Below the pieces are notes generated by a model. It worked only from the letters and a program-made list of their open reading frames with translations. It was not told where the DNA came from and searched no databases. 64,000 bases of DNA from Takakia lepidozioides. Taxonomy: Eukaryota; Plantae; Bryophyta. The position numbers were made by a program, and so were the translations under genes. Shown here in pieces: positions 23,986-50,400 of the stretch (within the stretch, counting starts at the first letter, position 1; every line of letters begins with the position of its first letter). Where the stretch lies: positions 8,804,001 through 8,868,000 of the forward strand of contig CM060732.1 of NCBI GenBank assembly GCA_030704615.1, read 5' to 3'.

Positions 23986-24770
23986 CGTTGCTTCAACAAG
24001 AATTTCATAATGCTCCCACTGCCTCACCATCAACCATTGCTCTGGTAGCAAGCAAATGCTTCCTGCAAAAACATGTGCTGGGAGAATGAGAGGAGTCCTG
24101 CACAAAATTTGATACTACATCACTTGACTCTGTCATGGACCATTTATCAACATTGGCTTCGCCAAATGTTCGGAATCATATTTACGTCCTTAGGACTGGG
24201 GCAGGCAACACTGGCTACATTGACAGCATTATGGAATTGAAGCGCAAAAGCCAATATGACTTCATCCAGGACAGTATTTTCCCGGGGCAAGAGTCCAGGA
24301 AAGTGTACTTATTCAAGATGTCCACAATTGGGGAGGGTTCGGGAGTTAGCCTGGTGCGTAGAATGCAGGCCGGTGGTGATCTTCACAAATCCTGGATTAT
24401 GTTGGATCATGTGAAGCGAGTGAAAGATTGGACGACAATGGCCTGTCATGTGTACGATCCTACATACCAGCGAGTTATGACTATTGCTCTTTGTGAAATG
24501 CGGTCGGAGGACACAGAGTCGCAAATTCTTATGTGGAAGTCCCTCATTAACATGATGAGAGTTAATGATGTGCCAAATGCTAATTTCACAGGGTTCATGG
24601 CTGACAGCGCACAAGCAAATTGAAATGTTGTGCGAACTGTGTTTGGACTAGATGACCCAAAAATATCAATGGAAGGCCGAGAACGCACTTGCCTCTTTCA
24701 TTGGACCCAGTCTCTGCAACGACACACAAAGAATTCCATAAAAGTGTGGAGTTGCAGGAGGAGCACTTCC
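23986..24770 (+). mobile_element. Mutator-like (MULE) DDE transposase N-terminal/core fragment, pseudogenised
   Basis: WIMLDHVKRVKDWTTMACHVYD (D1 region), FMADSAQAN*NVV (D2; the stop falls where Trp is expected) and RERTCLFHW (CxxH motif). Confidence 0.75.
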
Positions 24771-24839
24771 GTACAGGAAATGAGCTGAAAAGCTCACAAG
24801 GGTTCAGTAGGCTGACCCTGGGACCTACATGGACTAGGA

Positions 24840-25940
24840 CTAGTCATCCTCATCCTCATCCTCAGTGGAGGACTCAGAGCTATCCGATGAGCCTGATGAC
24901 TCCGCGCCCTTTGCCAGAGCACCTAAATGAGGCGGCGTTCCTCTAAGTCCCGCAGAGCTCTCATCCAATCCCTGGCCATGACCCCCGACCTCATCCATAC
25001 TAGTGCCCTGTAGTGCACTCATCCCCTCCGTGTTGGCCATGTTCTTCATGAGGGATTGCCAACCATGCTCCTTGGCGTAGTTGTACTCTACCGGAGATGG
25101 CTTCCTCTCAAACGCGCGTTGCTACACATGCCACAAATTAAAGTCAGTTCTTCGTGATGATGGAGCCAGAAAGAAGACATAATAAAATCCATAGGAAAGT
25201 ACGACTTACAAATCGCAAGATAAAACCCTTGGATCCGCCGGCGCCCCACTTGTGTGTGGATTCGTGCTTGTCAAGGCGGACTGTTGTTGCTTCGCGTGCC
25301 CGGTCAAATTTGGCCTTGTTTGCGGCATCAGTCTCTCCTGCAATGAGTGCATCCCACGATACCTATGCCCCCCTCCCCCCCCCCAATAATTAGTGAATTA
25401 CACACATACGTTGCATCGAATCCACCTCATTAATGCACATGCGACAAATGGAAGGTGACATGATTCAAGATTTGCCAACCTGTGTAATTCCATAAGGTGG
25501 TTTGGGTATGGCCCCCTTTTCCATTGCCCTCCTAATGATCTGTCTGGCATGGTACCTCTTATCCTTCAAGTTTCGCCCCACCATCTCCATCACCCTTGTG
25601 TCACTCCAATTGCTCGGAAACCGGCGGTCTAACTCACGGGCATACGCCCGCTTCGCGCCAAAGTGCTGATCAGCCCACTCGATGTGCAAAGGGAACCACC
25701 TCAATGCAAGTTCGAAGGCTGGCTTCTTCATAGCCTCCCAGAACGCACCGCAGGGGTCACCATGGCGATTCACCTCCACCGGTGGCACCACGATCTTTGC
25801 CAACTCCACGTCCTGTATCGCCAAGGCCATGTTCTTCTTCCCACCCTCTCCCTTCTTTGTAGCCTCCTTCCCCTGCTCCTTTGTTACCCCACTGCCCTCC
25901 CCCGCATGCACACTCACCCCTTCCTCTCCATGGGACTTCG
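24840..25940 (-). mobile_element. Spliced Ptta/En-Spm (Transposase_24)-like TE accessory gene, 5'-truncated
   Basis: Exons ~25940-25480, ~25361-25209, ~25122-24840 with GT-AG borders, reading in frame. Contains LDRRF...MVGRNLKDKRY...PPYGITQ|VSWDALI...THKWGAGG, similar to the helical and HxxGxGG pattern of this family. Acidic tail. Confidence 0.5.
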
Positions 25941-25941
25941 T

Positions 25942-28900: not shown

Positions 28901-29460
28901 TTGAGCCATCGAATGAATTTCGATTGATCTGATATTATTCCGGGACCTGTGAGAGGATGTCTGGAACGTGCTGGCACAGTTTGGAAGCTAACTGAAATTA
29001 TTTGGATGGGCAAGCATGCGTTCACCCGTTGAATGTATTCTGTTGGAGCTGGTATTGCTTTGGGACCTGTTGGACTGTGTTTCGCGTGCTCACAACTTTT
29101 TCTTCATTCCGATTTTGAATAGGGCGTGTAATGTAGCCATATGCAACGTGCGTGCCAAATTTGGGAGTGATCAAAATTCATTTGGACCCAAAACCACAGT
29201 TTCTTCCCTGTTTTGCACTTCAAACTTGATTTGTGTTCTATTTCATGCATTCTTTATAGAGAGTTCTGCAATAGTGAGCGAACAGAACACTTTTTTTTTG
29301 GGGAATTTTTGATTGGTCCAAATTTTGGCGGATGAGTAGCCGTGGGATGCTGGAAGCCGCAGAACAAAATTGAGCCAAAATCAAAATCGATACGTGCCAG
29401 AAACCCCCACTGAAAGGCAGCGCAAACCTATTTATTGGCTTTAAATAAATTTAGATTCCC
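25942..29460. repeat. Tandem repeat array 2 (same family as array 1)
   Basis: Marker at 26104, 26791, 27482 and 28482. The last unit breaks off at ~29460. Confidence 0.95.
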
Positions 29461-29486
29461 ATGTAAGTGAGGGACGCACAGAGACG

Positions 29487-31626
29487 GTGGATCCCTCCAA
29501 GACACCACAAAGAGGCAGCAACACACCGGTTAGACCATCGCGGGCAAGAGCAGCCCCTGCAATTACCCATACGGTGGAGAGTGGAGGAGAGGAAAGAACA
29601 CCAGAAAGAGCACGGATTGTGCAAGTTCGAGGTGAAGCCAGGGAGAGGGCAGTAGAGACGGGGAGAGTGCTGGAGGTGGTTTCGCAGGTGGCTGACCCTG
29701 TTGAGGAGGACAACAGGGAGCTTTCTGACCAGGATGACATCCTCCCGGACATCCCCAGGCCCCAAACCCGGAGCATACAGGCTGGATTTGGCGGTCCTGG
29801 TGGGCTGCCGGAAAACCCCTCTGCAGCAGACGTCATGTCGGAGGTGGATATGAAGTTGGCCGCTGCCAAGATGTTGGAGGCAACCCACAGCAACATTGGC
29901 AGGGTGCTGGGGGGCATGGTGTACCCGGCCAAGCTTCGAATTCCCCTTTGCCGCTTGGTGTCATTGCAGGTGGTGAGACCTGCCCTCCCATGCGATATCG
30001 ACAAGCTGAAATTCTCTTTCCGGGATGGATATCGAATGGGGTCTGCTGCGTTTTACGTTTCCATTGAGAACGACCACGGAGCTTCCCGTGCCCACACTTC
30101 CGATGAGGTGGACAAATGGGGTCCCCATTGGCAAACGCGAAATGAGGAGTTCGAGAGATCGATTGCTAGTGATCCTCTCTTCCAGCACTTGTCTGGTAAG
30201 ATGTTCTACGTGTGGGACGACAATCATCGCCTCCTGGCATGGATGGAGCACATTGCCCAAGCCCACCCCAACGACCTCGATTGGCATTTCGCCGTGGAGT
30301 GTGTTGTGCTGAAGGTTGCGGGGCCCAAAGATCGCAGTCTTCTCAAAGCTGCAATGGCGGACATCAACTCGTAAGTTACAACGCCTCTCACTTTTGGACT
30401 CTGAATTTGGAAGTCATTTCATTGCGAATCTATGATGAAAATTCCCATTTCAGTATTGTTTGATGGAAATGTGGCACTGCAGGGTGACTGAGAATGCCTT
30501 CATCGCCACCAACTTGTCCCATATGCTCTTCCGAGTGAAGGATGTGGGGAAGCACGGGGTGCAAGAGTTTGCCAATTCCCTCAGTGCCGACCTCCTATGC
30601 AAGTCGGAGGCAAAGGCAGACAGAACCTGGTATAGGCTGAGCGTCGACGCCATGGTGGACTACATATTTCGGGTAAAGCTCCTGACAGTTTTGTTGAGCT
30701 AATCTGTCTCTCCTCCCCCAATAGAAGAAAAGGTCTTCACCGTGATTTCTAATCTCCTCCCCCAATAGAAGAAATTGTGTTGAGCAGGATCTCTAATCTT
30801 ATGTGCGCATTCTTGACAGACGAAAATACAGCAGGATTTGGCACATGCGCGGAGGTTCTACATGGAGTCAGAGGAGAAGAATCCAACCCTCCCGGCACTC
30901 GAATCGTATGTCAAAGCTGCGGAGGTGAGGGCCCGCATAAAGTACAAGTCGCGGATGGTAAAGTACGTGGCCATAGCTGATCCCGCCCTTGGTGCCGACT
31001 TTCTGGTGGAGGTGGGGAAGCACTACTCTCGCGCTCTGAAGCCCACGATGACATTGGAGAAGCTCCATCATCTAGCCACATCCTGTGTGGATGCAACAGA
31101 AAAGGTGATACATTCTTAACCAAATTGTGGTGGCAACAACTCCTTTTTGTGGTGTTTGGCGCTTACGAATATGCTGGGTGGTTGGACAGACCCGGTGGCT
31201 CCAAATCTGGAATGGTTCCCAAAGTACCAGGGACATGTGGAGCTTCCCCAAACCGGACAAACTCTCTGACCCCACATTCGACTTGTGGATGAACCGCATG
31301 ACATGGTGGTTTCAGGTACTTCCCCACGCTTCGTTTGGGGCTTCTACTCTAGTAGGGGGTGGATTCATTGTATTTTTTTCAGGAAAGCGATCTGATGGAG
31401 AATCTCCACAGGTGACGACGAATGCGCAAGAGCAGCTGGACACACAAGCACATCAGTTCAAGATGGAGATATCTCCTGCAGCAGAGAGCCTACGCGACTA
31501 TGTGATGAGGTACTTTATGCTCTGCAAAACCAACCTATTCTTTCGGGAGATAGCAGATGCTCGCCGGAGCCACGAGTTCACCGACCAGCCGAACGCGGAC
31601 AAAGCAGCAATTCGCCTTCTGTACAG
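29487..31626 (+). CDS. Spliced gene with an N-terminal ParB/Sulfiredoxin-like domain, TE-associated, probably truncated at both ends
   Basis: Exons ~29487-30370, 30483-30672, 30820-31104, 31190-31315, 31412-~31626 with GT-AG borders and continuous frame. Motifs IPLCRL..VRP...IDKLKFSF..GY and FYVWDDNHRLLAW resemble the ParB/Srx DGxHR signature. Confidence 0.6.
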
Positions 31627-31785: not shown

Positions 31786-32588
31786 TAGTTCTAGGCCCTA
31801 TTGCCGTTCAGGGACTTGGCCATTTGCCACGTGCTTGTATTGCAGCCGCGGCCCGCCAGGCGACCGCACGTGGCGGTCGCCCTCTTCTCCCGCCTGCGAC
31901 CTGCACGTGGCGGTCGTCCCGCCCGCCCCTCCGGGCACCCCCATGCCGCCTGACCGCCACCTCACCGGAGGCGACCGGCGCTTGAGGATGCCCTGTCGCC
32001 ACCTCACAAGAGGCGACCGCCACTATGGCGGTCGTCTGCATGGCCACCTCAGGCGCCTCAAAGGCGACAGCCATGGTGGCGGCCGCCAAGATCGCCACCA
32101 CGTCCGACAGAGTGGCGACCACCACTAAGGCGGGCACTTGCCTCGCCACCTCATCCGGCTCCGGGGCGACCGATGCCAGCTCACTGGCTTCAAGGTGACC
32201 GCCACTTTGGCGTCACACTTGCCACCTCCTTGGACTCGCTGGAAATTGTGCCATGTTGTCTAAGGACATGGCAATGTTTTACCCATGTCTTTACCTACTG
32301 ACGTGACATGTGATCCAAATCCCGTCAGTGTCGCTGACGCCGACGTGACGTCGGCCTGCAACTGGGGATCGGTCGCACCCCTTTTTGTGACCTTCCTATG
32401 TTGCATCCTGTGTTCTATCTCCACTAAGTGAATTTGCTCGACCACATCACATAGTCATTGCAAAGGTATGTCTGAATGGCTACCTGTCTTGGACTGGATT
32501 AAGATGGCGTTGACGCCAGCTTAATCTCCACCCCCTCTAAGCTCAAGGAAATTGAAAAACAGAAAAGAAGCAACCACACTGAAGTCCT

Positions 32589-34189
32589 TGTAGAATAAAA
32601 CTATAATCAACCCTAAAAAAAAAGATAAACAAGTCTAGAGTTCGTTCGCTGGGGAAAGCACTATATGACTGCAAAATAATGATGCTATTCTACTCTATTT
32701 CTCCTCATTCCCTCAACAGAGAGTTTTCTACCACTACTTGCCTCAATCTAAAGCAACTAAGACCCTTCCAGTTTCAATGATATTCCCTCCATCCTCTATC
32801 ATCTCTATTCCATTGACTGAAATTAAATACCATTGTTTATCTAATTCTCTCCTCCAGTAATCTGCCTGATACAAGGTCAATAATTCTTTGCACCATCCTT
32901 TACTTAGAAGCCATAGATTGATTATCTCTATGTCACTACATCGTAGTCTTTTAAAGATATCTATCGACAGACTATCAGGTAATCCAATAATTAATTCTAT
33001 AGGGTCCTCCATTACTTCTCCTCACCACACAACACCATTGATTGTGCTTCACCACCAATCTTGTTTCTTCAGTTCCTCCAGGGACTTTCCCTCATCAAAG
33101 GTATTATTCGATTCTCTCATAAGTTTAGGATAGTCTTCAAAAGGTCTATACCATGTCTGCAACCAACTATGCTTCCAATAACAATTTCTTTATAGAATTG
33201 ATAACTCCTTGTACCATCCTCTGTTGACTAATTGTAATGAAAATATCTCTTTATCGCTACAACAAAGCTTCTGAAAGATTATTATCGATAGATGATCTGG
33301 TAATCCGGTGATCAACTCTGATAATTCTTTTATTCCCTCATCATTGCTCTCTGTCATGCAAATGGTTTTACTTCACTGTTATTCTCTTCCAATGAATCCA
33401 ATCAAAGACTTTCTATCTTCAAGTCCTTAATCTACCCCTTCATGAACTCTAGATAACCATCCAAACGACAGCACCACATATTAATCCACTCACGCTCCAA
33501 TTGACGATGTTCATATAGAATTGATAATTCCTTTCTCCAGGCTTTACTCATACTTTCTATTTGAACTAACTCTGCCTCATTGCAGGATAAACTCTTAAAT
33601 ATCCAAATCAAATTTCTCTGGGTAAACCAGGAATTAATTCTCGCTCAGATGCTTTATCCTCTCCATTTGTGCACATTCTCACTATCCCACATAATTATAA
33701 TTCTTCAACCATTACATTCAGAATTGGACTCACATTCAATCATTCTATTCTTCACACAACACAAAGTGGATTGAACTTCTTTTTTCTACTTCTTCTCTTC
33801 TATTCATTCAAAAACACAACATCACAAGAACGCAGTACTAATCTACCACTGAGAAATCACTCCATCTCCTAACTCCTACTCACTCTACTCTGATCTGCTC
33901 TGGTCACAGCTCTCTGGCTCAATTGACACCGTCTGCTTCACATGAACGTAATATATAGCAGAGTGCTCCAACAACTTTAATAACCGCTCAACCTCTTTTA
34001 TCCATCCTCTATAATCATTCATCCATTTCTTATATCATCCAGTCAAGGATAGACTATCGGCTGCATATAAAATATCGAGGAACACTGCTCTATCGCAGCA
34101 ATATGGAAGGTATCACAGAGTATATCGATGGAAAAAACACTAAAAAATGCTAAAATTGTAGTTCAACCAGAAATTCCTATTATTCTGCA
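32589..34189 (-). repeat. 3' LTR (1601 bp)
   Basis: tgtagaataaaac...tattctgca; near-identical to 48455-50057. Confidence 0.95.
32743..33012 (-). CDS. F-box-like mini-ORF 3, 3' LTR copy
   Basis: MEDPIELIIGLPDSLSIDIFKRL...LWLLSKGWCKEL. The copies of ORF1 and ORF2 in this LTR carry a frameshift and a TAA stop respectively. Confidence 0.55.
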   Translation of the reverse strand: MEDPIELIIGLPDSLSIDIFKRLRCSDIEIINLWLLSKGWCKELLTLYQADYWRRELDKQWYLISVNGIEMIEDGGNIIETGRVLVALD

Positions 34190-34192
34190 TAG

Positions 34193-34203
34193 CCCCACTC
34201 CTA
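34193..34203 (-). promoter_or_regulatory. Polypurine tract next to the 3' LTR
   Basis: Minus strand reads aggagtgggg-cta-TG(LTR). Confidence 0.7.
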
Positions 34204-34238
34204 TTTATGGAGCGCCCCGGCAAACACTATCTTTATTG

Positions 34239-37023
34239 CTAAGTCCTAGGCCTCTTAGAAGGATTCCTCGTATCGGGCTCTTGCGACCTGCGATGATCAC
34301 CACGATCAGACCCCTCCTTCTGTTGCTGCTTGAATGCTATGTATGGATAGTATCGCGAAGGGCCCCAATCATCATACACAGCAGGATCACACTGAAGGAA
34401 TCCTGTCAAACACATCAATTCCAACACCCGCATTTCCTTGGCCGGATGATGCAACAACTTGGCCACCATTCCAAACTCCTGGCCTCCCAGCATTGGCCTG
34501 TTGATATCAACAACAACATGATAGAAATGACACCACTTTGCCACTACTCCGCAAAAGATCGATGCCATAAAACACAAATGAGCATAGTGAGTCGATGCAA
34601 TCCCTGGAATTATTTGTATGCTATCTCACAATTTTCTGCAGTGCTGAACTCACCAAGAATCAATGGCCAGTTATAAGGTAATGACGTCAAAAGCTTGCTC
34701 TCACGCCATTGACCACGGCGTGCACAGAGACACACACCAAAACTGCCCCTAATATTTCGAGGCCATGGTCCACTGATTGGTGTTGGCCGTATGCCCAACT
34801 TCGCAATCCATTCTCCTGTTGCACTATGGCCGTAATCTTTCCCCATCCATAGCAACACCTCCCAGCACGGTATCACCTTATCGTCAGAATCCATATAAAC
34901 CTTCTCTGGTTGTCCCAAAAAGTCTTAATACTCCCAGTTAATGGGAAAATGACATCGTTCAAAAATCATAAACCCCACTTGAGAGACTTGGGTGGCACTG
35001 GGCTGATTGATATACAAATCCTCCATCCATTTGGCAGTCAATAGTTCCTGCCATGAGCGAGCCTTCATCCACTGCCCAACTCGTTGCTGAATTGATGCCT
35101 GCGTCCACACATAGGCAACGCCATGCAAACAATCTGGAATGAGCCGATACCTAGTATGGGTTTTCTCCAACATACCATGGAATTGATCTGCCTCCAATAC
35201 TTGAGCCACAAGATGCTTCAACATTTCCAAGTACCTAGGTAACAATTTGTCATCTGGTATTGGGATGGTAGAAAGGAATCCACAAGTAGGTACACGATTC
35301 CATCGCCGATTTTGTAGATGCGATTGACAAAACGCTTCCAGCCTGTCTTCAACTGCTTATAATACAAAAAACAACGATTGGTAGGATCACCAACAGTAAA
35401 CAAGAACTGGTCTGGATGGGCAACCACCAAATCACCTCTTATTACCATCTCCACTACAAGATTATTGCGATAGGAGTACAAAGGTTCCTATTCTTGCTCC
35501 AAGTCAATTGGCTCTTCAGGTCCGCCAATAACCAATGTCAGAATTTCACTATCATATTGATATCCCTGAGTGAGGCTCTGGGCATAGCATATGTTCTGCC
35601 AATCTTGCAGAATCGTACCACCCACCACTTCAGCCGGCTTTGCATGTGATCGGCTCAGCTCCAATTCAGCCATCTGAGCCCTCATTGTCTCCTCCATCAC
35701 ACCCATTTCGCCCTTCTACTCAGCACGAGAAGCCTCAAACTCCTGTTGCAATGCCACATATTGCTCTTCTGAATTTTGGACCACTGGAGGACGTTTCTCC
35801 AATTCGACAATCTGATTAGCAGCTTCTGCCAATCTCTTCTCTAATTCTGCAATTCGACTGTCCTTGGAATTCGATCGTTCAATCGACATGGTAATCAGAG
35901 CGTCCTTATCTGCAGAAGTCTTCTGATGTTGTGCCTCTCGAGTCCGCCATTGCTCATTCGATTTCTGGAGTTCCCTTGCATCTCCCTCCATCCTTTTCTT
36001 GGCATCATCCCAAGAAAGTTGCAACTGTTGATTACGCGACAAAATAGCAGTATGAGTGGTCCTCAAATCGTCCAATTCCCCCTTCACGTCCTTGTGATCA
36101 ATTGCTTCTGCTGCTATGTCTTGAAGACCAGAGACCAATTCACGCAACCTTGCTGTGAAAGAGGTTTGACTCTCCACATCCTTACTTCCTGATACAACAA
36201 TAGCAGTGATAGGAGTAGTTGCTACAGACGTTGTAGTCCTTGGATTCTTCTCCTGGGCCCTACTCGTCTCTGGCCTGTCAATAATCTCAGTGTCATTTGC
36301 ATCGGCAGGAGGTGGTACCTTCAATCGATGTTGCAGAATCATAGACAAATAGGTCGCACAAAACAGAGTGTCAGTCTTACCACTCTTACGCTTCGATATT
36401 ATCTCCTCATGGATCTTCCCACAGACGAATTCTGCCCAATTGATTTGCAGGCCCATGAATGTTGCTACCACCGAATTAAGTTGCGATTGCGCGACATAAG
36501 TAGCGGCGTTCTTCAGGGCTAATCGGCTTACTACAAACTTCATCCATTCCATCAGCTCAGGTCTGATTGCTTTGGCAATTGCCCAACCTCCCGTTCGATT
36601 GAAAGCATTCTCCTTGAAATGGCTTGAAGGAACAAAAGCCTCATCCTTAAAACCATCGACTTCAATTCCTGTTGAGGGCAATAACAAGACCTCTGCGACA
36701 GTGTGAGCATCAACAACTATCCCCGTGCCCTTCACTATTCCACTCTTCGAACCAAGATCGTAAGAATTGTAAAACTACATAACTAATGTCATGCTAGGCT
36801 TTGGCAGACCCTTCAAACAGAGAATAAAAAACTCCAACATCTGTGCCTGCCTCCACAGCGCTTTCTGATCACGGTCACCCAAAATCATAGTAATATCACA
36901 ACTCCGCAATTCCTCTGCTATCATGGAAACCGGCCCCGACAATGGTTGTTGCGCAGATTTCTTCACCATCTTGACTAATTGGCTTGAAATACTACTTTTC
37001 CTCACAACACTCACTTCACCCAA
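34239..37023 (-). pseudogene. Extra sense ORF of the retroelement: Athila env-like/'putative plant transposon protein' domain, coiled coil and an unknown C-terminal region, broken by stops
   Basis: LVM*FYNSY...VDAHTVAEVLLLPSTG...INWAEFV..KIHEEI...LFCATYLSMIL, then a heptad-rich segment, then ORF pieces 35481-34239 in the same orientation. Confidence 0.65.
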
Positions 37024-37869
37024 TGCTCCCTCCTACACACTCTCTCTCACACACTACAACAGACTATCGCTCTGCAAGAAGATAATGACACAACACTACA
37101 ACACACCCTATGTAATTTCGACGATTTAGTTTGACGCTGGCGTTGACTGTTGTCACTTTCGACTGTTCCAACCATTTGCAGTCAAAATTTATATTAAAAT
37201 ATTCGAGGTGTTAGACAACCGCGAAAATTTTGACTGTAGTGAGAGACTTTGACTACCTAAAATGAGCTCACTGAGACAACCAGATAAGCAATGGCACGTG
37301 TCATCACAATATATAAATTATATAATAATATATATATGGATAATAAGAAGTAAAAAAAATAACCATTTTTTCACTGATCCAGCACATTAATAGTAAACTA
37401 ATCGTGTGCTGGTTAAGGTTAGTGAAACAAAACAACTGAATTATATGAACGAATTATAAACGAATGCCTTGCTGGCAGCTATTGGATGAACGTATGAAAT
37501 ATAATTTTTGTGCACTGGATGAACGTATGAACGGATGATAATGCACTTGGCTCGAGTTTAGGGTTGCTAGGTCGCAGTGGGCAGCCTGGCTGGGACTTAG
37601 TGTTTTTTGGGTCGGCGTGGTTCGAGAGCTCCGCAGGCTTAGGGACTTAGCGTTTGTTTGTCTTTGTGCCACCATCTGTGTTTTCTTAAGGTTCGCAAAC
37701 CAGGATAAGCGGTTTCTAAAAGACTAGTATCTTGCTGTGTGCACATGAGAGAGCGGGTGGGCGGGGGGAGGAGAGAATTGAGAGAGAGAAGTGCCGCGCA
37801 ACGAGTGTACTGTTTGTGGGATCGACCTGTATGTTTGCTCTTGTTGTGTCGGCCATTGTCACGACGTGT

Positions 37870-40800
37870 GCTATATGGGAGCTTTAGAGCGGAGACAACA
37901 GGGAGTGTTCAACAGTATGGCTGAATGAGATGTGGTGTCGTGGAGTGCGATGATTGCAGAATATGCACAGCGGGCGCGGGATGGAGGCTTTGCAGACATA
38001 TGAGCACCTTCTTCAACACATTTCAGCCTGTTTTCCCTATTATCAGGATTCAGAGTAATCCCTAAATTTTCAGGTTGAATTCTGCAAGTTAGCTCGACGT
38101 TGGTGCAAAAAGGTGAATGCCTGTTGGAAGCGCAAGTCAGCATAGGAACTAGTGTGAGAAGTAGGGTTAGGGTGTTTGCTGGAACAAATCTAGGCTGTCA
38201 TTGTAAGCTGCTAGCAGCAAAGCAAGGAGGTACTATCATTTATTTGTGCAGAGGTATAGATAGCTGAAGGAGCAGGGATAGAGTGTGGGTCCAGATTCAT
38301 CCAAGAGGACTGGATTTCGACTCTGATAACATGGCAAAACAGGGTGAAATGTATTGAAGAAGGTACCTTCATTAGCAGCGAATTGTTCTATCAATTGGGC
38401 TGCTGCCACTTCTGTTTCCAGGATGACATCTGGTACAATTCCAGCTTTGACAATGTCACTATGGACCTCTTCCCTCTTTTCCAGAGCTCCCAGGCTTGCA
38501 CACGCATTGCAAACACAAACAAACACGATGTGGTTGGGCTTCACCCCTTCACACAACATTTGCTCATAGGTTTCCTAAGCATTCCTACCACACCTACGCT
38601 TGGTAAATCCTGCCAACATAATATTCCACGTGATCAAAGATCATTGAGGCATTCTGTTGAACACTTGGTGAGCATCCATGATGCTCCCGCACTTAAATTA
38701 TATGTTGACAAGGGTGTTGAGTAGAAAAACATTTGGTGTGAATCCACTTTGGATAATGTGAGTGTGCACCTGCTTTCTAGCTTCCAGACCATCCATCTTG
38801 ATGCACTTAAGCAACAGACAGACATATCTGAATCTGCTAAAATGCCTCTTTGGTTTAGAGTCTGTAGAGCCTCTGTCAGTCTGCCTGCCGCACAAAGTAT
38901 CTTCACATGCCCAGAAGTGCCAGAAGAGGCATTGTGGACTCCCTCTCTTGATCCGCCAGTTAGCTCATTCATGATGTGAGCTGGCATGAGTTTTATAAAG
39001 ATCCTTCACGATGGAGGGACAACCGCATTCGCAAGGTGTGGTTTTTCTTAATGTACGATGTGAAGTCCATCCTGCAAAGGTGGGCTCTTGGCTCCTGTTA
39101 GTACCATGATTTGGTGTTCTTCCTGATGTTTACAAGGTTCTTGGGAGAGTCATCTTGGTCTTAGTAGGCCGTGTTTCAATCTCTGCCTGCTCAGCTGCAC
39201 CGTGGTGGTTCTCACAGACACAAACATCACACACTAGAGGTCATTTTGGGTTGATGCTCGGTCAAATCCTCCATGGGTCAAGGACAATGTGGTGAGGGCA
39301 CCTTCTTCTTTGACCTGTTGCAGCCTGTTTTGCCCCCTCATCAGACTTGGCCCTGAGATGCATATTGAATTATGTAAGTTAACTCATTGGGTGGATCTGT
39401 GGTGGTTTGGAGTGACTTTGAACTAGTGTGATAAGTAGGGTTGGGGTGTTTGCTGGAACAATTCTAGGCTGTCATTGTCAGCTGCTAGCAGCAAGGCAAG
39501 GATGTATGCATGATTTGTGCAGAGGTATGGATAGCTGAAGGGGCAGGGATAGAGTGTGGGTCCAGATTCATCCAAGAGGGCTGGATTTCAAGCTCCAGAT
39601 TACCTATGATTCCATGTGGATCAATAGCTACAAGAAACCTGCTGCATGGGTAGATGGTCAAGTAAAGGTAGCAGCTGCAGCGACACAGTTGATAAAATCA
39701 GGCACCTCAACCATGACCACAGCTTCTGAAAGAGGATCAAGAGAGGGAGTCCACAATGCCTCTTCCGCTGGGCATGTGAAGATGCTTTGTGAGGCAGGCA
39801 GACTGACAGAGGCTCTACAACTTTAAGCCAACAAGGCATTTCAGCAGATTCAGATACGTCTGTCTGTCTCTTGCTTAAGTGCATCAAGATGAAAGGTTTG
39901 GAAGCTGAAAACAGGTGCACACTCATATTATCCAAAGTGGATTAACGCCAAATGTTTTTCTACTCAACACCCTTGTCAACATGTATGTTAAGTGTGGGAG
40001 CATCATGGATGCTCACCAGGTTTTCCACAGAGTGCCTCACCGATCTTGATCACGTGGAATATAATGTTGGCAGGATTTACCAAGGATGGGTGTGGTAAGG
40101 GTGAAACCCAACCACATCACATGTGTTTGTGTTTGTCATGCGTGTGCAAGGCTGGGAGCTCTGGAAAAGGGGAAAGAGGTCCATGGTGACATCGTCAAAG
40201 ATGGATTTGTACGAGATGTCATTCTGAACACTGCCCTGGTGGACATGTATGCCAAATGTGGGTGCATTAAGGATGCGAAGGGAGTTTTTAACACTATGGC
40301 TGAACGAGATGTGGTGTCATGGAATGTGGGGGGAATGTGATGCTTGCAGGGTACGCACAGCAGGGACATGGTATGAAGGCTTTGGAGACCTATGATCAAA
40401 TATTGATGGGGGAAGGGGTGAAGCCCAACCACATCACGTTGCAGCATACTGGTACTTCATAGCCATGGCGGCTCTTTCAGCCCCTCCATTTTTTTTTCTT
40501 TTGGTTTTTTTGGCGTTGGGAGAGAGCAGCAGCTCTGCTGTCTCCTTCCCCTTGCTTATGCCGATCGTTAAAGGGGAAATTGTCATTCTGAACTCTGCCT
40601 TGGTGGACATGTATGCCAAATATGGGTGCAGCAAGCCTGATGTGAAGGGAGAGTTTGACAATATGGCTGAACGAGATGTGGTAGTTTGGAATGCCATGAT
40701 TGCAAGGTATGTGCAGCATGGGTATGGGATTAAGGCTTTGGAAACATAAGAGCAATTGATGTGGGAAGGGATGAAGCCAGACCAGGCCGTCATGTTCATT

Positions 40801-41040
40801 TGTTTTTGTAATATGCAAATGCGAGCCTAGCAGCCCTAGGAAGGGGCAAAGAGGTTTATGGTGACATTATCCAAGCTGGAATTGTACCAGATGTCATTCT
40901 GAACATTCCCCTGCTGTACATCTACGTCAAATGTGAGCCTGGCAGCCCTCAAAAGGGCACAAAGGTCCATGATGACATCGTCAAAGCTGGAGTTGTCAGT
41001 CTAAACACTGCCTTGGTGGATATGTATGTCAAGGCAGCCC
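37870..41040. pseudogene. Cluster of PLS-class PPR gene fragments (mostly +, one inverted block) inside the LTR element
   Basis: GVKPNHITCVCVCHACARLGALEKGKEVH, DVILNTALVDMYAKCG, VFNTMAERDVVSWN, PNVFLLNTLVN. Many frameshifts and stops. 38400-38990 is inverted relative to 39700-40230. Confidence 0.9.
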
Positions 41041-41492
41041 TGGAAGTGGATGTCACTTTGGGTGACAAGGTAGTTGGCACCACCATTCTCTGGAACTCAT
41101 TCTCAAAATGATTTCTAATGTTCTCTTGACATGTCCACGATAGTGTTGGACCTAGCTGCACAACAGATAATCCTTACTCAATGACTTCAGTTGGGCAGTG
41201 ATCTATGGATATGGCAACATGGCCGTCATGTTGGTCATTTGTAGAATGTGGCCAAAACTTGTTTTGCAAAACACTCTTGATATAAACCAGTTTTGAGCCA
41301 TCCAAATGTTTTTGGTTCCGACCTGTATTTGTATTCTATGTTTTGTAATATATTTTCAATGCAGTGCAGCGAATCAAAAAATTTAAATACAATATCCACT
41401 AATTCACATACGTATAGATATAAACTAAAAGTAAATAAAAAAAGAAATATCAGTAATAAAAAAACAAATATTAAATAAAAAGCCTCCCAATT

Positions 41493-41494
41493 CA

Positions 41495-41526
<32 letters not shown>
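41493..41526. repeat. (TA)n microsatellite
   Basis: Long tatatata run. Confidence 0.85.
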
Positions 41527-42300
41527 CATCCCCAGAATGAAACATATTTACTAAAATGTGTCCTCTTTTACTGCTTCACAGTAAACACACTATACAAAGT
41601 CAAGCAAACTCACTATCACTGATTTACAGTCAAACCGTATACTAAACATCATGGAACATAGTCAATATGTTCCACTTCAGTTAAACCACTTTACTACACG
41701 TCATGCATCCATGTCACTCTGCCCTTAACACTTACTACACGTCATGCATCCACCTTATAATTCAGTTAAACCATTTTACTACACGTCATAGCCATGTCAT
41801 AGCCACATCGCATCCACGTCATACTGTGTTGCCTACACGTCACCCCCTAGGTTTTACTGTCACATTTCACTGTCAGAACCTGGCATCTGGATTCGACTGC
41901 TTGACTGAAACGACTTGACCTTTGTCACACATGTTCGACTATGGAGGCTGGGAGTAAAAATGTCGCAAACGACTAAAAAATGAGTCAAATACAGAGTCGA
42001 AAAGCCCAGCTTGTATTGTAGTGCAACAATGGAAATGAGAGCGGAAAAGACGGCCCCACTCCTATGTATTGACCAGGGTGGCATAACCTAACAGCAGCCA
42101 CTTGGCTCTACAATTGTCTTGCAATAATCAATGAAACTAACTGTCGGTCATAACTGATTCGATATGGCGGCTACTACAAACGGCGACGACGGCTCCCTAT
42201 CAACCTAATGATAACGCAATTATAAAAAAATTGATTCTTGACCAATAGAATTGTAAAACACCCTCCCCCTCACGTAACCTAGATTCTGCCCACAGAATAC

Positions 42301-45300
42301 TTAAGTATGGTAGAGTTTAAGGCAATCGCCATTAATGCGAGTGTCCAATGGATCGCCGAAAATTGTCAATAATTTCACTGAGCCATTGGGAAAAGCCTCC
42401 ACCACTCGATAAGGGCCAAGCCAACGCATTTTTAATTTGCCAGGAAATTTTTGAAAGCGACTATCATAAAGGAGCACCAAATCATGGGTTTTAAAAGCTT
42501 TGGGCTTAAGGCGGCTGTCATAATAGTCCTTCCGCCGCAACTGGGTGACTTCAATATGTTGTAACGCCTGCCGACGAAGTTCATCCAATTTTACCAATTG
42601 CAACAATCGAGCTGTAAGAGAGTCAGTATCGCCAAGACACTCTTCGATAGCTATGCGGAGAGAGGGTATCTCTAATTCAATAGGCAAAATCGGCTCTTGG
42701 CCATAGACAAGTTGAAACGGTGTAAAACCTGTAGTAACCTTAAAGGCAGTCCGATAGGCCCACAAAGCAGAAAATAGCTTGATATCCCAATCGTTGCCAG
42801 AACCAGAAATTGTTTTGGTCAAGATTACACATAAAAGTCCATTGGTTTTCTCAGTTTGGCCATTCGCCCGAGGATGATAAGGGGTGGTCTTTCGATATAC
42901 GTAGCCGTCATTTGCTCTATAGTGGAGTTTAAGAAATGAGTACCACGATCACTCACCAATTCACGGGGGCAACCAAACCGAGTAATGATATTTTCGTATA
43001 AGAATTGAGCAACTACCTTAGCCGTATCAGTACGAGTGGCCATTGCTTTTGCCCACTTAGTAATGTATTCAGTAGCAACAAGAATATAGCGCTTTTGACC
43101 ATTGCGGGAAGCAAGAGCAATAGGACCAACAAAATCAATTCCCCATTTTTCAAAGGGAGCTTGAGCCAGAATGGGGACAAGCGGCATCGAGCTCGATCGC
43201 ATAGGCTTACCCAAACGCTGACAAGCATCGCAGCGACGCACATAAGCAAAAGCATCCTTGAATAGAGTGGGCCACCAATAACCCGATAATAGAACCTTAC
43301 GACCAGTTGCATCACCGGCAAAATGGCCACCACAAGAATTGGCATGGCACCAGGTTCCAATATTGTAGACACCTCAACTTCCAAGATACATCGACGTAAA
43401 ACTCCATCTTTCCCAAGCCGATAGAGAGTGTCGCCAATAATTGTATAAGGAGCAGAGGTCTCAACCAATCGTTGTTTCTGCTTTTCAGTCGCAGGAAATT
43501 GCTGCAACGATAAATAATTGAAGATAAGGGCATACTCACCCGTCATGACATCAATGACAAATAACTTAGCATCAGGGAAAGAGTCATCTATCGGCTCAGA
43601 GCCTACTTCCTTTGATAATCGACTCAAATGATCCGCATTGGCATGTTTGTGATATTTCAGAGCATCATGGTCGACATGAAAAACAAAAGGGTATCCCAAT
43701 AAATAATGGCGAAATTTCTAAATAGAATAAATCATGCCCAAACCCTCTCGTTAAGTGGTGGTATAATTAATCTCAGCTACAGCCAATTGCCGGCTAGAAA
43801 AATAAATCGGATGATCAAAAGACTTATCATCATTTTGACTTAAAACGCTACCAATAGCATAATTCGAGGCATCGACATAAACCTGGAATTCCTTTGTCCA
43901 ATCAGGTGAAACCAAAATAGGCGCCTTTATCAATCGGCCCTTTAATTCATGAAATGAATGTTGACATTCTTTTGTTCATTGTGGCTCGACATCATGCTTC
44001 AATAATTGCGTCAAAGGTAAGGCAATCTCGGTATATCGACGGATAAAGCGACGATAATAACCCACATACCCCAAAAATGCACGTACCTCCGTCACTGTCG
44101 TGGGGGTAGGTAATTGGACAATAATCTCAATCTTGGTGGGGTCAGTTGATATGCCTCGAATCGATACAATATGGCCCAAGAGTTTCCCCTTGGTAACCAA
44201 AAATTGGCATTTGCCTACATTTAGGGAGATTCCATACTCCTTACATTTGTGAAAACACAGCTCCAACATCTCAGCATGTGTTGCTTTACTGCTATAGACA
44301 CAAAAATCATCCAAAAATATCTCCATTATTAACCGCAATTAGTCCTGGAAGGCTGCAGTCATCACTCGTTGAAATGTAGCAGGAGCATTGCAAAGTCCGA
44401 AAGACATAACTTTGTAGGCATAAGTACCCCAATCAGTAGTAAAAGTAGTCTTTGGCCGATGTTCCTCTGCAATCGTGATCTGATTGTAACCAGAAAACCC
44501 ATCGAGGAAAGAATAGCACTCATGGCCCGCTACTGCATCCAAGATAGTATCGGTATGGGAAATAGTCCTTCCTGGTCATAGCATTAAGCTTCCGGAAGTC
44601 CTGACAGATCCGCACTTTGCCCGATTGCTTTTTGGGGACAACCACTATTGGCGTTACCCAATCGCTATAAGGTACAGGATAAATGAAACCAGCAACTAAC
44701 AATTTATCCAACTCTTCTTTAACCAACAGAGAATATTTAGGATTCAATCGATGTTGACATTGCCGCACTGGCATTGCTCCTTCCTCCAATATAATGCGAT
44801 GCTGGCAAATTTCTGGGGGTACACCCCGAAGATCAGTATAAGTCCATGCAAAAGCCGCACGATGTTTCTGGAAACAATTCATTTGAGGGAATATCCGCAG
44901 AGATTATAATTTCATTGGGTTCAGCAGCCGTATTCAAATTCAGGGTTTGATAGGGGTCCTTCTTCACCAATGGAGCACGATTATCATCAGCCGAATCGTA
45001 CCACGCGATATCTTCTGACGTGGAGGCCAATTCCCACTCAGATTCATGCTGCACCATGTAGGATGGACGAGCTCCCTCCCATCGCAAAATAACATCATCA
45101 GAGTCACTATCAAAATCACCATGCCACAGATACTCCCCTAGATTAGCACATCGGTAAATCCGTTGGCTACGTGTATGCTTAGGCGACAGTGGAATGACTT
45201 GAGAATCACTATCGGCGTCAGATGTCCCTCCTTCAGCTTCGGAAGTAAACTCACATTCCATCTCCTGAGTTTCCCCATGATAAGCTACTGGGTACATTTG

Positions 45301-47830
45301 CAAGACCATTTTTTGTTGGCCTTTACCCAAAGTCAAGGTGCCTTTTCCCCAGTCATTTTTAGCTTTAGACTGGAATAACCATGGTCTCCCCAATAAAATG
45401 GGATAAGAATAGGCAGAGACGTTTAGTCGGAAAACAACATAATCAATGGAATATTCAATAGCAGCAATTATCGTTGGGACTGCAGTTAAAACACCCATTG
45501 GTTTAACGCGACTTTGATCGGCCATCCTCAACACCAATCGAGTGGTCTGTAAACCACCAAGTCCTAACTCCTCCATCGTGTCTGAACTCATCAAATTGAC
45601 ACTAGAGCCACCGTCAATCTGTACTCCAGTATTGACAACACCATCTATCGTCACATCAAGCACAAAGGCACCCGGATCCAGATTGAGTGTCGATATACTC
45701 ACTTCATGGACGTCATTGTTTGATGATTGTCTTCGAACCAGAGACGACTGCAAAAAATATCGACATTGAGGTGCGATAGCCAACAACTACCGCAAGGAAA
45801 TAGTAGGTTGCAAATAATCCAGATCCTTCAAAATATCATAATGGACCAAGCCTTTAGTCATCGCCATAACCCGCCTCCCACGCGATCCCTTGACATGTCC
45901 TATCTTGCCATTACCCATTTTCGGACCAGTATACTTCTCTCGATTTCTCCGCTGGACTGGCTCCGTTCTAGGTTGGGGTATAGCAACCGGTATTACAGGA
46001 TCAGGGTCGATAGGGTCCACGATAGTTCAAGGTGGATGGACTACCAAACTAGGCGATATCATCGGTGGTATCGGATGAATATCGGGTATGGTCGGCAACG
46101 ATTTGCATCTCATCAGTTTGCTTGGAGTTCACACTATCGGGATTCTTTAGGGCAGATTCCTCTACAATAGGGTCCATCGGCAATAGCTTACGACCTCTGG
46201 TAGTCACTGCTTTGACCATGGGAACATTGGACTCAGCATTGGAATAATATGATTGCAAGGGGGTATCAGCTGCTTCCATCTTGCCTTTGCCTTTCAGGGT
46301 GGTTCTTTTATCAGCCATTAACGTATTCATATCACCCGTCCTATCCTCCACACATTCTTGTACTGTTACTCAATTTACAACTCGATTGGTATTAGTATTT
46401 CCAAAAGAATGTGATGGCCCTGCAGTTGATGGAGCTGTACCCAAAATTGGAGGCATAGGAGTTGATGAAGATTGCTGATGGATAGGCTTTTGGGGGTATG
46501 GACTCTCACATTGTTCGGCAATATGGCCCTAACCACCACAACGTCCACACAACGGTATGTAATTGACCGGAGCCTTTGGATAGGACATTTGCTTGCAATA
46601 TGTCCAAGTTCATGACAACGAAAGCAAACAGGGTATTGCCCATTTCTCAATCGCCGTGTATTAGGCCGATTGGGAGAGTTAGATTGTTGAAGATACCCTT
46701 GTTGTTGACCGCCTCCAAAGGATTGCCCGTAAGCACCCTGGGGCGGTATTCCCCTCCATGCTGGCGATTTGGCTGATTAGTTGGCTGATACTAGCTTTGT
46801 GGCCCTCGGGCACGTCTCCAAGGCTGCCGACTCTTGGGAGGTGACCCTGACCATTGAGCAGGCATCGCTTACACCACATGTGCCATTAGGGACTCAACCT
46901 GATTGACGCCCCACCCTCCTGGCTTTTGATTGGTCTTGGCCGGGGTTAACCCCATAGCAGTTTGGAGATGCCAATGCTGCAAAATAACATGACCTGATTT
47001 ACCACAATATCCATACTTGGCAACATTGATGGGGTTTGATGCTGGTGTCAATGGGCATTCATGGGCTAAATGACCATGAACCTAACAGATAGAACACCAC
47101 ATGTTGGCCCGTTGATTATTTGGCTTTGATCTCCCTTCTCTCTTAGAAGCCAATTGCACGGAGAGTTCCTCCATCCGCTTAGTTAATGCAGCAATGTGCC
47201 CTTCCTGGGGGTCAATTGTCATGCCAGCTGATAATTGGTTTTGTAAGGATACAGGGGCATACATTCCCATAGTAGTTTGAGGAGATGAAACTATGGTTGA
47301 GGGCATCATTGTTGGTGAAATTTGTGAAGCCCAAGAATTAGTATCAAACATCGTGGGCGCCACTGAATAGATGGAAACATTAATAGTCTCCCATAATTTA
47401 GCTCAATTGAGGGCTGTTTGGAGATTGGCTGGTGTCCCCTCTTTTACAAATCTCTTCAATTCCTGCGGCATCAATCCTTCCACAAAGAGGCCCATTTGCA
47501 TATGGTTAGGGATATTGTGGTTATTCCATCGCCGGAGGATATCTTCCAATCGTCCTGCAAAGGAACCAACTGATTCTCCTTCTACCATATGGAGCTTGGT
47601 CAATTGCTCACGCAACCGGTCGGTAAAACCCAAGGGCCTGAATTGAATAAAAAAGGCTGTCTTTAGGGCATTCCAATTAGCAAAGCTACCATGAGGTTGA
47701 CGATCATACCATTGAAAAGCTAATTCATGCAATGTAGCAGGGAACATCTACTGCTTCTGTTCTAGCATTATTAGCAATACACGCCGTTATAAATTGGGCT
47801 AAGTGCCGGCAAGGTTCCTCCACCTGACTT
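42301..47830 (-). pseudogene. gag-pol polyprotein (gag, zinc knuckles, protease, RT, RNase H, integrase), frameshifted
   Basis: Gag FPATLHELAFQWY. Protease VQIDGGSSVNLM. RT KVRICQDFRKLN, FLDGFSGYNQI, FGLCNAPATFQR, IFLDDF. RNase H VYVDASNYAIGSVL. Integrase PFEKWGIDFVGP, LVSDRGTHF, ALWAYRT, GKLKMRWLGPY. No chromodomain. Confidence 0.95.
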
Positions 47831-48430
47831 AAAACTATGCCATTTTTGCAATTCAAATAATCAGCATAAGAGGGCAAAAATCCCTGAATGCTTTTGGAAT
47901 AAGAAGAATGAGGGTAAGACAATTGAACTTCCGGGTGCTCAGCCAACGAAAAGCGGAGATGCTAGCTTTGGCGATAGCTCAGGAGGAACAGATTCAATTA
48001 TTACCCAAAAAGGAGGCAACGGCAAAGACAATTGAACTATCTATCGCACGAAATAAGGGACATCGTCTGGTAGTCTCCATAAGGAGAAAAGGGTTATGGG
48101 GAATGAAGGAATCTCCCATGCAAACGGAGCATCAGGCTAAGGCAAGGGCCGATCGATTGGCAGTGCGCATAGCACGACGTGCATTATTAGCTGCACAGCT
48201 AGCTGCATCGGCACCGCCTAATTTACCCCCTATTGTACTTCCTAACGTACCTATTGTACCGCCTATTGTACCAGCACCAATGGCTGCAGTACCAATTGGA
48301 GTTAATTTACAGTCGATACCGGTGGTGGTGAATGTCCTCCGCCGTCATCTCATCTGCTTTCAACAATCGCAATAATAAAAGAAATAGTGAAGGTGTATTA
48401 AAGCATCATTATCTCAAACCGCATTGTCTT

Positions 48431-48448
48431 TCCCCGGTAGCGGCGCCA
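48431..48448 (-). promoter_or_regulatory. Primer-binding site (Athila-type)
   Basis: Minus strand TGGCGCCGCTACCGGGGA, a few nt inside the 5' LTR edge, close to the typical Athila PBS TGGCGCCGTTGCCGGGGA. Confidence 0.85.
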
Positions 48449-48609
48449 AAAAGATGTACAATAAAACTATAATCAACCCTAAAAGAAAAGGATCAACCAG
48501 TCTTGAGTTTGTTCGCTGGGGAAAGCACTATACGACTGCAAAATAATGATGCTATACTACTCTATTTCTCCTCATTCCCTCTACATAGAGTTTTCTACCA
48601 CTACTTGCC

Positions 48610-48879
48610 TCAATCTAAAGCAACTAAGACCCTTCCAGTTTCACTGATATTCCCTCCATCCTCTATCATCTCTATTCCATTGACTGAAATTAAATACCAT
48701 TGTTCATCTAATTCTCTCCTCCAGTAATCTGCCTGATACAGGGTCAATAATTCTTTGCACCATCCTTTACTCAGAAGCCATAGATTGATTATTTCTATGT
48801 CACTACATCGTAGTCTTTTAAAGATATCTATCGACAGACTATCAGGTAATCCAGTAATTAATTCTATAGGGTCCTCCAT
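48610..48879 (-). CDS. F-box-like mini-ORF 3 in the 5' LTR
   Basis: MEDPIELITGLPDSLSIDIFKRLRCSDIEIINLWLLSKGWCKELLTLY. Confidence 0.6.
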   Translation of the reverse strand: MEDPIELITGLPDSLSIDIFKRLRCSDIEIINLWLLSKGWCKELLTLYQADYWRRELDEQWYLISVNGIEMIEDGGNISETGRVLVALD

Positions 48880-48915
48880 TCCTTCTCCTCTCCACACATC
48901 ACCATTGATTGTGCT

Positions 48916-49224
48916 TCACCACCAATCTTGTTTCTTCAGTTCCTCCAGGGACTTTCCCTCACCAAAGGTATTATTCGATTCTCTCATAAGTTCAGGATAG
49001 TCTTCAAAAGGTCTATACCATGTCTGCAACCAACTGTGCTTCCAATAACAATTTATGTATAGAATTGATAACTCCTTGTACCATCCTCTATTGACTAATT
49101 GTAATGAAAATCTCTCTTTATCGCTATAACAAAGCTTCTGAAAGATTATTTTCGATAGATGATCTGGTAATCCGGTGATCAACTCTGATAATTCTTTTAT
49201 TCCCTCATCATTGTTCTCTGTCAT
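48916..49224 (-). CDS. F-box-like mini-ORF 2 in the 5' LTR
   Basis: ELSELITGLPDHLSKIIFQKLCYSDKERFSLQLVNRGWYKELSILY. Confidence 0.6.
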   Translation of the reverse strand: MTENNDEGIKELSELITGLPDHLSKIIFQKLCYSDKERFSLQLVNRGWYKELSILYINCYWKHSWLQTWYRPFEDYPELMRESNNTFGEGKSLEELKKQDWW

Positions 49225-49268
49225 GCAAATGGTTTTACTTCACTGTTATTTTCTTCCAATTAATCCAA

Positions 49269-49544
49269 TCAAAGACTTTCTATCTTCAAGTCCTTAATCT
49301 GCCCCTTCATGAACTCTGGATAACCATCCAAAGGACAACACCACATATTAATCCACTCACGCCCCAATTGACGATGTTTATATAGAATTGATAATTCATT
49401 TCTCCAGGCTTTACTCATACTTTCTATTCGAACTAACTCTGCCTCATTGCAGGATAAACTCTTAAATATCCGAATCGATATTTCTCTGGGTAAACCATGA
49501 ATTAATTCTCGCTCAAAATCTTTATCCTCTCCATTTGTGCACAT
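49269..49544 (-). CDS. F-box-like mini-ORF 1 in the 5' LTR
   Basis: ERELIHGLPREISIRIFKSLSCNEAELVRIESMSKAWRNELSILY. Confidence 0.6.
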   Translation of the reverse strand: MCTNGEDKDFERELIHGLPREISIRIFKSLSCNEAELVRIESMSKAWRNELSILYKHRQLGREWINMWCCPLDGYPEFMKGQIKDLKIESL

Positions 49545-49816
49545 TCTCACTATCCCACATAATTATAATTCTTCAACCATTACATTCAGAATTGGACTCA
49601 CATTCAATCATTCTATTCTTCACACAACACAAAGTGGATTGAACTTCTTTTTTCTACTTCTTCTCTTCTATTCATTCAAAAACACAACATCACAAGAACG
49701 TAGTACTAATCTACCACTGAGAAATCACTCCATCTCCTAACTCCTACTCACTCTACTCTAGTCTGCTCTGGTCACAACTCTCTGGCTCAATTGACACTGT
49801 CTGCTTCACATGAACG

Positions 49817-49826
49817 TAATATATAG
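49817..49826 (-). promoter_or_regulatory. Candidate LTR TATA box
   Basis: Minus strand CTATATATTA about 230 nt into the 5' LTR; conserved in the 3' LTR (~33949-33958). Confidence 0.5.
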
Positions 49827-50057
49827 CAGAGTGCTCCAACAACTTTAATAACCGCTCAACCTCTTTTATCCATCCTCTATAATCATTCATCCATTTCTTC
49901 TATCATCCAGTCAAGGATAGACTATCGGCTGCATATAAAATATCGAGGAACACTGCTCTATCGCAACAATATCGAAGGTATCATAGAGTATATCGATGGA
50001 AAAAGCACTAAAAAGAGTTAAAATTGTAGCTCAACCAGAAATTAATATTATTCTACA

Positions 50058-50400
50058 GTCCTACCGTCTGTTTGTGTATTTGTCTGTCTGTCTGTCTGTT
50101 TGTTTGTGTACCCGTCTGTCTATCTACCTATCTTACTGGGTCTCTGTCTACCTGTCTTACTGGGTCTGGATTAAGATGGCGTTGACGCTAGCTTAATCTC
50201 CACCCCTCTAAGCATAAGAAAATTGACAAACAGAAAAGCACAAACCACTCAAGAACCCTGTCTGTCTGTCTACCTACCTGTTTGTCTGTCTGGGTCTGGA
50301 TTAAGATGGCGTTGACGCCAACTTAATCTCCACCCCTCTAAGCATAAGGATATTGAAAAACAGAAAAACAATAATAAAAAAAACAAAAAAAAAGTTTTTT
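50058..50400. repeat. Hairpin plus (GTCT)n tandem units, continuing the unit at 32470-32588 that the LTR element interrupted
   Basis: gattaagatggcgttgacgccagcttaatc near-palindrome at 32497, 50169 and 50299, each followed by tccacccctctaagc and separated by gtct-rich microsatellite. Confidence 0.85.

Follow-up and report, generated by a model that had tools for sequence, protein, structure and literature searches.

Long terminal repeats (LTRs) of retrotransposons are usually treated as non-coding regulatory sequence. Within a 64-kb window of the genome of the bryophyte Takakia lepidozioides (the window being the whole stretch of DNA that was analysed, with positions counted from its first letter), one LTR holds three closely spaced open reading frames (ORFs) that resemble the F-box, the domain by which proteins are linked to the ubiquitination apparatus of the cell. 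We know of no plant retrotransposon that carries ubiquitin-ligase adaptors. Are these frames genes, where did they come from, and what would a retrotransposon do with them? An earlier note on this DNA had drawn attention to the three frames, and its claims are taken up below together with the evidence that bears on them.

The host element

The LTR belongs to a degenerate Ty3/gypsy LTR retrotransposon of 17.5 kb, which lies on the minus strand at 32589..50057 and is delimited by its LTR pair, target-site duplication (TSD), primer-binding site (PBS), purine-rich tract (PPT) and domain order. The 5' LTR (48455..50057, minus strand, 1603 bp), inside which the three intact F-box-like ORFs are found, and the 3' LTR (32589..34189, minus strand, 1601 bp) both have TG..CA ends and are 96.0% identical, with 64 differences between them. 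By direct reading, a TSD of 5 bp, AGGAC, stands just outside the element (32584-32588 and 50058-50062), a PBS starting with TGGCGCC is located 6 nt past the end of the 5' LTR (48432..48448, minus strand), and a PPT lies directly 5' of the 3' LTR (34190..34206, minus strand). The interior, on the same strand, contains a gag fragment (Retrotrans_gag, 47406..47747; PF03732, E 2e-12), a zf-CCHC zinc knuckle detected with Pfam at 46.4-46.8 kb, and a fragmented pol, also detected with Pfam, at 42825..44575. The pieces of pol are reverse transcriptase (RT; RVT_1, 43979-44575; PF00078, E 2e-11 and 2.3e-7), RNase H (RT_RNaseH, about 43.7 kb, at the start of the 43016-43717 piece; PF17917, E 3.3e-3) and the integrase core (rve, 42825-43241; PF00665, E 5.7e-11). 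The order gag, zf-CCHC, RT, RNase H, integrase is the Ty3/gypsy order and, together with the TG..CA LTRs, the 5-bp TSD, the PBS and the PPT, it places the element among the Ty3/gypsy LTR retrotransposons. No protease was matched by Pfam in the element interior, and an Rfam search of the element gave no match. Gag-pol had been described as full of stops, and every one of its domains is indeed split by stops and frameshifts. With LTRs that are 4% diverged and a broken gag-pol, the present copy is an old, dead insertion.

Other parts of the element and its surroundings also deserve description. About 8 kb between the integrase and the 3' LTR are without explanation. A 352-aa stop-free stretch in the element's sense lies in this interval (35719-36774, minus strand), with no Pfam match and no homologue among 5.8 billion proteins; a further accessory ORF is conceivable, as is a piece of a nested insertion. 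Two further open stretches (38239-38574 and 38637-39005, minus strand) have a translation that looks PPR-like by eye; no Pfam match was obtained over 38239-39005, and a fragment of a host gene within the element would be our guess. The LTR at 48455-50057 is strand-asymmetric in composition, its sense strand being 33% A, 30% T, 25% G and only 11% C, and the GC skew on the plus strand is about -0.29 in both of the 2-kb bins that bear an LTR. The insertion site at 50058-50360 is (CAGA)n-like low-complexity sequence, on which contigs of many sequencing runs pile up, runs guessed to be RNA included. Farther away, at 20489-29502, the window contains a large array of tandem repeats whose higher-order unit measures about 695 bp (spacings of 695-705, some of 962-987). 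Its copies are 96-98% identical and have a 120-bp sub-repeat inside, and the array looks like a satellite or a complex repeat block.

Three reading frames in one LTR

The three ORFs, here called F1, F2 and F3, all start with ATG and run in the sense direction of the element, on the minus strand. F1 (49269..49544) encodes 91 aa from ATG to TGA, with the F-box-like domain at about residues 16-49; F2 (48916..49224) encodes 102 aa, with the domain at residues 17-50; and F3 (48610..48879) encodes 89 aa, with the domain at about residues 9-41. The earlier note had placed the frames at these positions and about 40 bp apart, which is borne out by spacers of 44 and 36 nt and start-to-start distances of 320 and 345 nt; between F2 and F3, which are read in the same frame, there are one TGA and 12 codons. 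It had also assigned three ORFs to each LTR, and this holds for the 5' LTR, where F1, F2 and F3 are intact, but not for the 3' LTR, where a 1-bp deletion and a premature TAG disrupt F1, a TAA at codon 56 (33190-33192) cuts F2 short, and only the F3 copy (32743-33012, minus strand) is intact. When a family HMM was run against the six-frame translation of the 64-kb window, no further copies of the F-box unit were found outside the two LTRs.

The shared motif ELIxGLP..LS..IF..L....E........W..EL..LY that had been read from the three translations is confirmed by their alignment, in which 22 columns are invariant across F1, F2 and F3. The F-box-like part is followed in each protein by a tail of 40-50 residues with a shared pattern rich in Trp and Tyr, and no recognised domain, a substrate-binding domain included, was found in the tails.

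Short frames of this kind might open by chance in an AT-rich LTR and match a motif spuriously, and the small size of the domain, the weak E-values reported below and the lack of homologues would fit such an origin. Chance is effectively refuted, and we regard it as highly improbable. In 20,000 mononucleotide shuffles of the LTR, two or more ATG-initiated ORFs of at least 85 aa never appeared on the sense strand (0/20,000), and one appeared in 1.6% of them, so F1-F3 are not chance ORFs. Frames that were open by accident would also not be expected to resemble one another as proteins in the way that these do, with E-values down to 2e-17 without similarity in their DNA, or to differ unevenly across codon positions.

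Past evolution as coding sequence

Blastn with a word size of 7 detects no DNA similarity among F1, F2 and F3, while tblastn among the three gives E-values from 1e-9 to 2e-17. Their pairwise protein identity is 33-38%, and the description of the ORFs as diverged paralogous coding units therefore stands. Aligned codon by codon, the units have an identity of 0.53-0.60 at the first two positions and of 0.37-0.48 at the third, the expectation from base composition being about 0.28. Nei-Gojobori estimates of dN/dS are 0.55 for F1/F2 and 0.37 for F1/F3, and synonymous sites are saturated for F2/F3. When a single ORF was allowed to diverge neutrally in simulation to the same nucleotide identity, both descendants were still open in at most 2 of 10,000 trials, and the simulated neutral amino-acid identity was 22-30%, against the 33-38% observed.

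With divergence highest at third positions, a dN/dS no higher than about 0.55, and frames that hardly ever stay open in neutral simulation, the units must have evolved as coding sequence. There is good evidence, judged from these comparisons, that the units diverged under purifying selection acting at the protein level, and the triplication is much older than the present insertion.

Resemblance to the F-box

All three proteins match Pfam F-box or F-box-like profiles over the same profile positions, 2-33. For F1, the match to PF12937 has E 2e-4 (21.5 bits, cut-off 24.3) and that to PF00646 has E 6.4e-3 (16.8 bits, cut-off 20.5); F2 matches PF00646 with E 4e-4 (20.6 bits, curated cut-off 20.5), and F3 matches it with E 0.014 (15.7 bits, cut-off 20.5), so that only F2 reaches the curated cut-off, and narrowly. 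No Pfam family besides F-box and F-box-like gave F1, F2 or F3 a match better than E 0.1. The hallmarks used here to recognise the domain are a Leu-Pro with which helix 1 begins, a ladder of hydrophobic residues and, some 27 residues beyond the Pro, a Trp in helix 3. They are present as G-L-P, the I-F..L ladder and W..EL, which are invariant in F1-F3 and in the copies of the 3' LTR. Among PDB sequences, the F-box of yeast Cdc4 is the best or second-best match of the paralogue profile (E 0.029-0.062), its hallmark residues align residue for residue with those of F1-F3, and the F-box of Dia2 is matched with E 0.21. A language-model search of the ESM Atlas points the same way, an F-box cluster being the top match of F2 (score 0.95) and F-box clusters making up 27 of the best 30 named matches of F3, mostly small streptophyte proteins; the nearest clusters are streptophyte F-box proteins of 118-146 aa.

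Structure prediction is less decisive. The AlphaFold2 model of the full-length protein has a mean pLDDT of 48.6, and Foldseek returned noise for it, while the model of the 51-residue core places helices at 10-20, 24-33 and 35-49 with a mean pLDDT of only 63.5. The best VIA alignment of the core model is to the Skp2 F-box (1fs2_A, residues 106-151), and it is weak (Z 2.5, rmsd 3.6 over 46 residues); the Foldseek match of the core is non-significant, with E 5.9. The F-box resemblance that had been claimed from the motif is thus upheld by Pfam matches at the same place in all three proteins, by the F-box clusters of the ESM Atlas and by the matches to Cdc4 and Dia2, and it is tempered by the single match at the cut-off and by PDB E-values above 0.01. 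The comparison with F-box profiles and structures that had been suggested as a check gives profile matches (E 2e-4 to 0.014), of which that of F2 alone reaches its cut-off, and no significant match among the folds.

Searches for closer relatives were negative. With F2 and a 6-sequence alignment as queries, no homologue was found among 5.8 billion proteins, and when 1.84 billion representatives were searched exhaustively with an HMMER profile, the one sequence returned was a spurious repeat protein and no true homologue. The exact sequences of F1-F3 are absent from the protein collection and from the assembly records.

A gene that is real can still carry a motif that misleads, and the units might encode helical proteins that serve the cycle of the element, for instance with Gag, with RNA, as an integrase cofactor or as a regulator, and that look like F-boxes only superficially, without any dealings with SKP1 or the SCF ligase. 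In favour of this reading, coding constraint is solid, whereas none of the F-box tests gives more than a marginal result (F1 and F3 below the Pfam cut-offs, PDB E-values of at least 0.03, non-significant folds), and plant Ty3/gypsy lineages are known to have accessory ORFs without known function ahead of gag. We nevertheless consider it decidedly unlikely, for paralogues at about 35% identity have retained exactly the F-box hallmark positions, and profile HMMs and language-model features, which draw on different information, both indicate the F-box alone. On these comparisons, F1-F3 are quite likely to be homologous to the F-box.

Neutral drift of the present copy and its relatives in the host

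Differences between the 5' and 3' LTRs are equally dense within the ORFs (31 in 855 bp) and outside them (33 in 748 bp), and those within the ORFs comprise 6 synonymous and 22 non-synonymous changes, 2 nonsense changes and 1 indel. At a decay of about 2% per LTR, no stop arises in any of the three ORFs in 32% of neutral simulations, and for this reason the open set in the 5' LTR carries no weight for selection. The earlier note had stressed that the frames all stay open in the 5' LTR; an argument from intactness to selection is contradicted by the neutral simulation and by the counts of synonymous and non-synonymous changes. The ORFs of the present copy drift neutrally, and the set in the 5' LTR is open by luck. 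What speaks for constraint is how the three units diverged from one another long ago, not their intactness in this LTR.

The family to which the LTR belongs is highly repeated in the host, since 698 contigs from one DNA run of the same organism fall on the 3.5 kb around the LTR with identities of 85-100%. According to the contig variant tables, most family contigs differ from the present copy at 13 well-supported sites within the ORFs. At 5 of the 13 the 3' LTR agrees with the majority, which marks these changes as private to the 5' LTR, and at the remaining 8 both LTRs depart from the majority; of these changes 4 are synonymous, 3 are non-synonymous and 1, at the stop codon of F1, is between stop and Arg. 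The synonymous share at these 8 sites is above the roughly 25% expected in what is a tiny sample, and it hints at constraint, the sample being far too small for a test. As for the stop codon of F1 (49269-49271), most family contigs differ at its first base and read CGA (Arg), with a TAA three codons later.

Beyond the host, no other copies of the family were found in metagenome, viral or prokaryotic-genome contigs, no metagenome contig contained a 26-nt exact pattern of the family, and megablast found none in plasmids.

Promoter and expression

A TATATAT motif, read directly from the sequence at 49819..49825 on the minus strand, precedes the ATG of F1 by about 275 nt and is a candidate TATA box that may act as the promoter. 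The ORFs had been said to lie 3' of a candidate TATA box, and their position relative to this motif agrees with that; TATA-like strings also occur within F1, however. Nine ATG triplets stand between the TATATAT motif and F1, and the sole AATAAA is found inside F2. Judged by its sequence, a polycistronic layout preceded by nine upstream ATGs would be unfavourable for scanning ribosomes. F2 and F3 might conceivably be translated from alternative starts or by reinitiation, or ribosomes might read through the one TGA that separates them; these routes are named here purely as possibilities.

In two small runs guessed to be RNA, which together amount to very little data, no contig covers the ORFs. 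Apart from the low-complexity flank, the contigs of these two runs match only 48396-48548, about 150 nt that stretch from the LTR end across the PBS into the leader. With 17 mismatches, 6 gaps and dissimilar sequence to either side of the match, they were rejected as evidence of expression, being a diverged match that derives from another element family. A different family shares the module at 48396-48548 and may be transcribed.

Origin and possible function of the cassette

On balance, and with a slight preference, we read the locus as one copy of an LTR family that carries a lineage-maintained, triplicated accessory gene for F-box mini-proteins, kept under purifying selection during transposition. 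According to this reading, one unit of about 320-345 bp, encoding a protein of about 90-100 aa, would have been duplicated twice long before the present insertion, and each of the resulting proteins would consist of an F-box-like three-helix domain followed by the Trp/Tyr-rich tail of 40-50 residues. All three units would have been held as coding sequence by purifying selection while the family transposed, and only later would this insertion have died and its F-box ORFs begun to drift neutrally.

The units could instead be passengers. An LTR may have taken up host DNA with small F-box genes or fragments of them, in which case the coding signature would date from before the capture and the element would draw no benefit. 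Retrotransposons do capture host gene fragments, an example being the telomeric elements of Drosophila, which have captured fragments of an F-box gene, a homologue of CG12520 (PMC13534243). Capture would also suit the small streptophyte F-box proteins that are the ESM Atlas neighbours of F1-F3, the neutral drift of the present copy, and the lack of visible expression in the two small runs guessed to be RNA. It accounts poorly, however, for the arrangement of the units, which are intronless, have their own ATG and stop, and follow each other in one orientation at 36-44 nt, F2 and F3 in frame; such a tight array of one orientation resembles the internal duplication of a single unit and not a cluster of host genes. 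The units moreover share a tail motif besides the F-box despite the loss of DNA similarity, and the protein databases searched yielded no host-like relative. We consider a passenger origin unlikely.

If the units are a maintained accessory gene, the likeliest biochemical activity, to judge from the domain, would be binding of host SKP1 through the F-box. An F-box mini-protein might then act as a minimal SCF adaptor, with the short tail recruiting a target, or alternatively as a decoy that titrates SKP1, either of which could benefit the element, provided that the proteins are expressed. It is doubtful, though conceivable by analogy, that a Ty3/gypsy clade of this genome encodes in its LTR F-box mini-proteins that bind SKP1 and redirect or jam host SCF ligases so as to counter a restriction or silencing factor; a full scenario of SCF hijack or suppression of silencing seems improbable to us.

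Relation to known systems

F1-F3 share with cellular F-box proteins (PF00646/PF12937; Cdc4, Skp2 and streptophyte F-box-only proteins) the signature of about 45 residues, with its Leu-Pro, ladder and Trp, and, in the low-confidence core model, the three predicted helices. They differ from these proteins in sitting in an LTR as three tandem copies, and in having no LRR, WD40, kelch or FBA substrate domain, the tail being only 40-50 aa long.

In concept, the nearest systems are the F-box proteins that parasites of plants encode themselves and with which they redirect the SCF ligases of the host, namely polerovirus P0, nanovirus Clink and Agrobacterium VirF. P0 degrades AGO1 and in this way suppresses silencing, and binding to SKP1 has been demonstrated experimentally for P0, Clink and VirF. 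The likeness is one of analogy only, for these proteins belong to viruses and bacteria and not to retrotransposons, and no sequence similarity between them and F1-F3 was detected. As regards location, the superantigen gene (sag) of mouse mammary tumour virus (MMTV) is likewise an ORF inside the LTR of a retroelement. MMTV is a vertebrate retrovirus, however, sag is the single ORF in its U3, and the protein and function of sag are unrelated to F1-F3.

Plant LTR retrotransposons of the Tat/Retand/Grande group have accessory ORFs (aORFs), in sense or antisense orientation between pol and the 3' LTR, which, like F1-F3, add coding capacity beyond gag-pol, are conserved within a lineage and have unknown functions. 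ORF1 of Ogre is reportedly an aORF located between the 5' LTR and gag. In contrast to such aORFs, F1-F3 lie wholly inside the LTR, are triplicated, occur twice per element and would be present on solo LTRs as well. A review of plant aORFs places them between pol and the 3' LTR in its headings and in passages on the subject, and its main text contains neither "in the LTR" nor "within the LTR" nor F-box (PMC7264820).

The Drosophila telomeric elements mentioned above resemble the present LTR in that F-box-derived sequence has come to reside on a retrotransposon. In that case, however, the sequences are fragments of a host gene on non-LTR elements, whereas F1-F3 are complete ORFs with a long coding constraint, inside an LTR. 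The earlier note knew of no described example of an F-box cassette in an LTR, and a full-text literature search (F-box with retrotransposon, LTR-encoded, anti-silencing) agrees, having found no such cassette, the nearest case being these F-box gene fragments of Drosophila (PMC13534243). The feature is real and non-random, and it appears to combine retrotransposon accessory ORFs with parasite-borne F-box proteins in an unusual place, the F-box identity being probable.

Implications

Should the proteins prove to be expressed and to bind SKP1, the retrotransposon would have in them a tool for counter-defence or for manipulation of the host, and the element would offer a retrotransposon counterpart of the strategy of viral P0 and Clink, with two cassettes in each full element and one in each solo LTR. 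Placement in the LTR would then also be an unusual means of gene amplification, as each insertion and each solo LTR would add copies. Genome annotators should be aware, even if the units are passengers, that small F-box ORFs could arise from hundreds of LTR copies. Should the reading as SKP1-binding proteins be correct, the path from F-box to SKP1 to target would give a direct experimental route into the ways in which bryophyte transposons handle host control.
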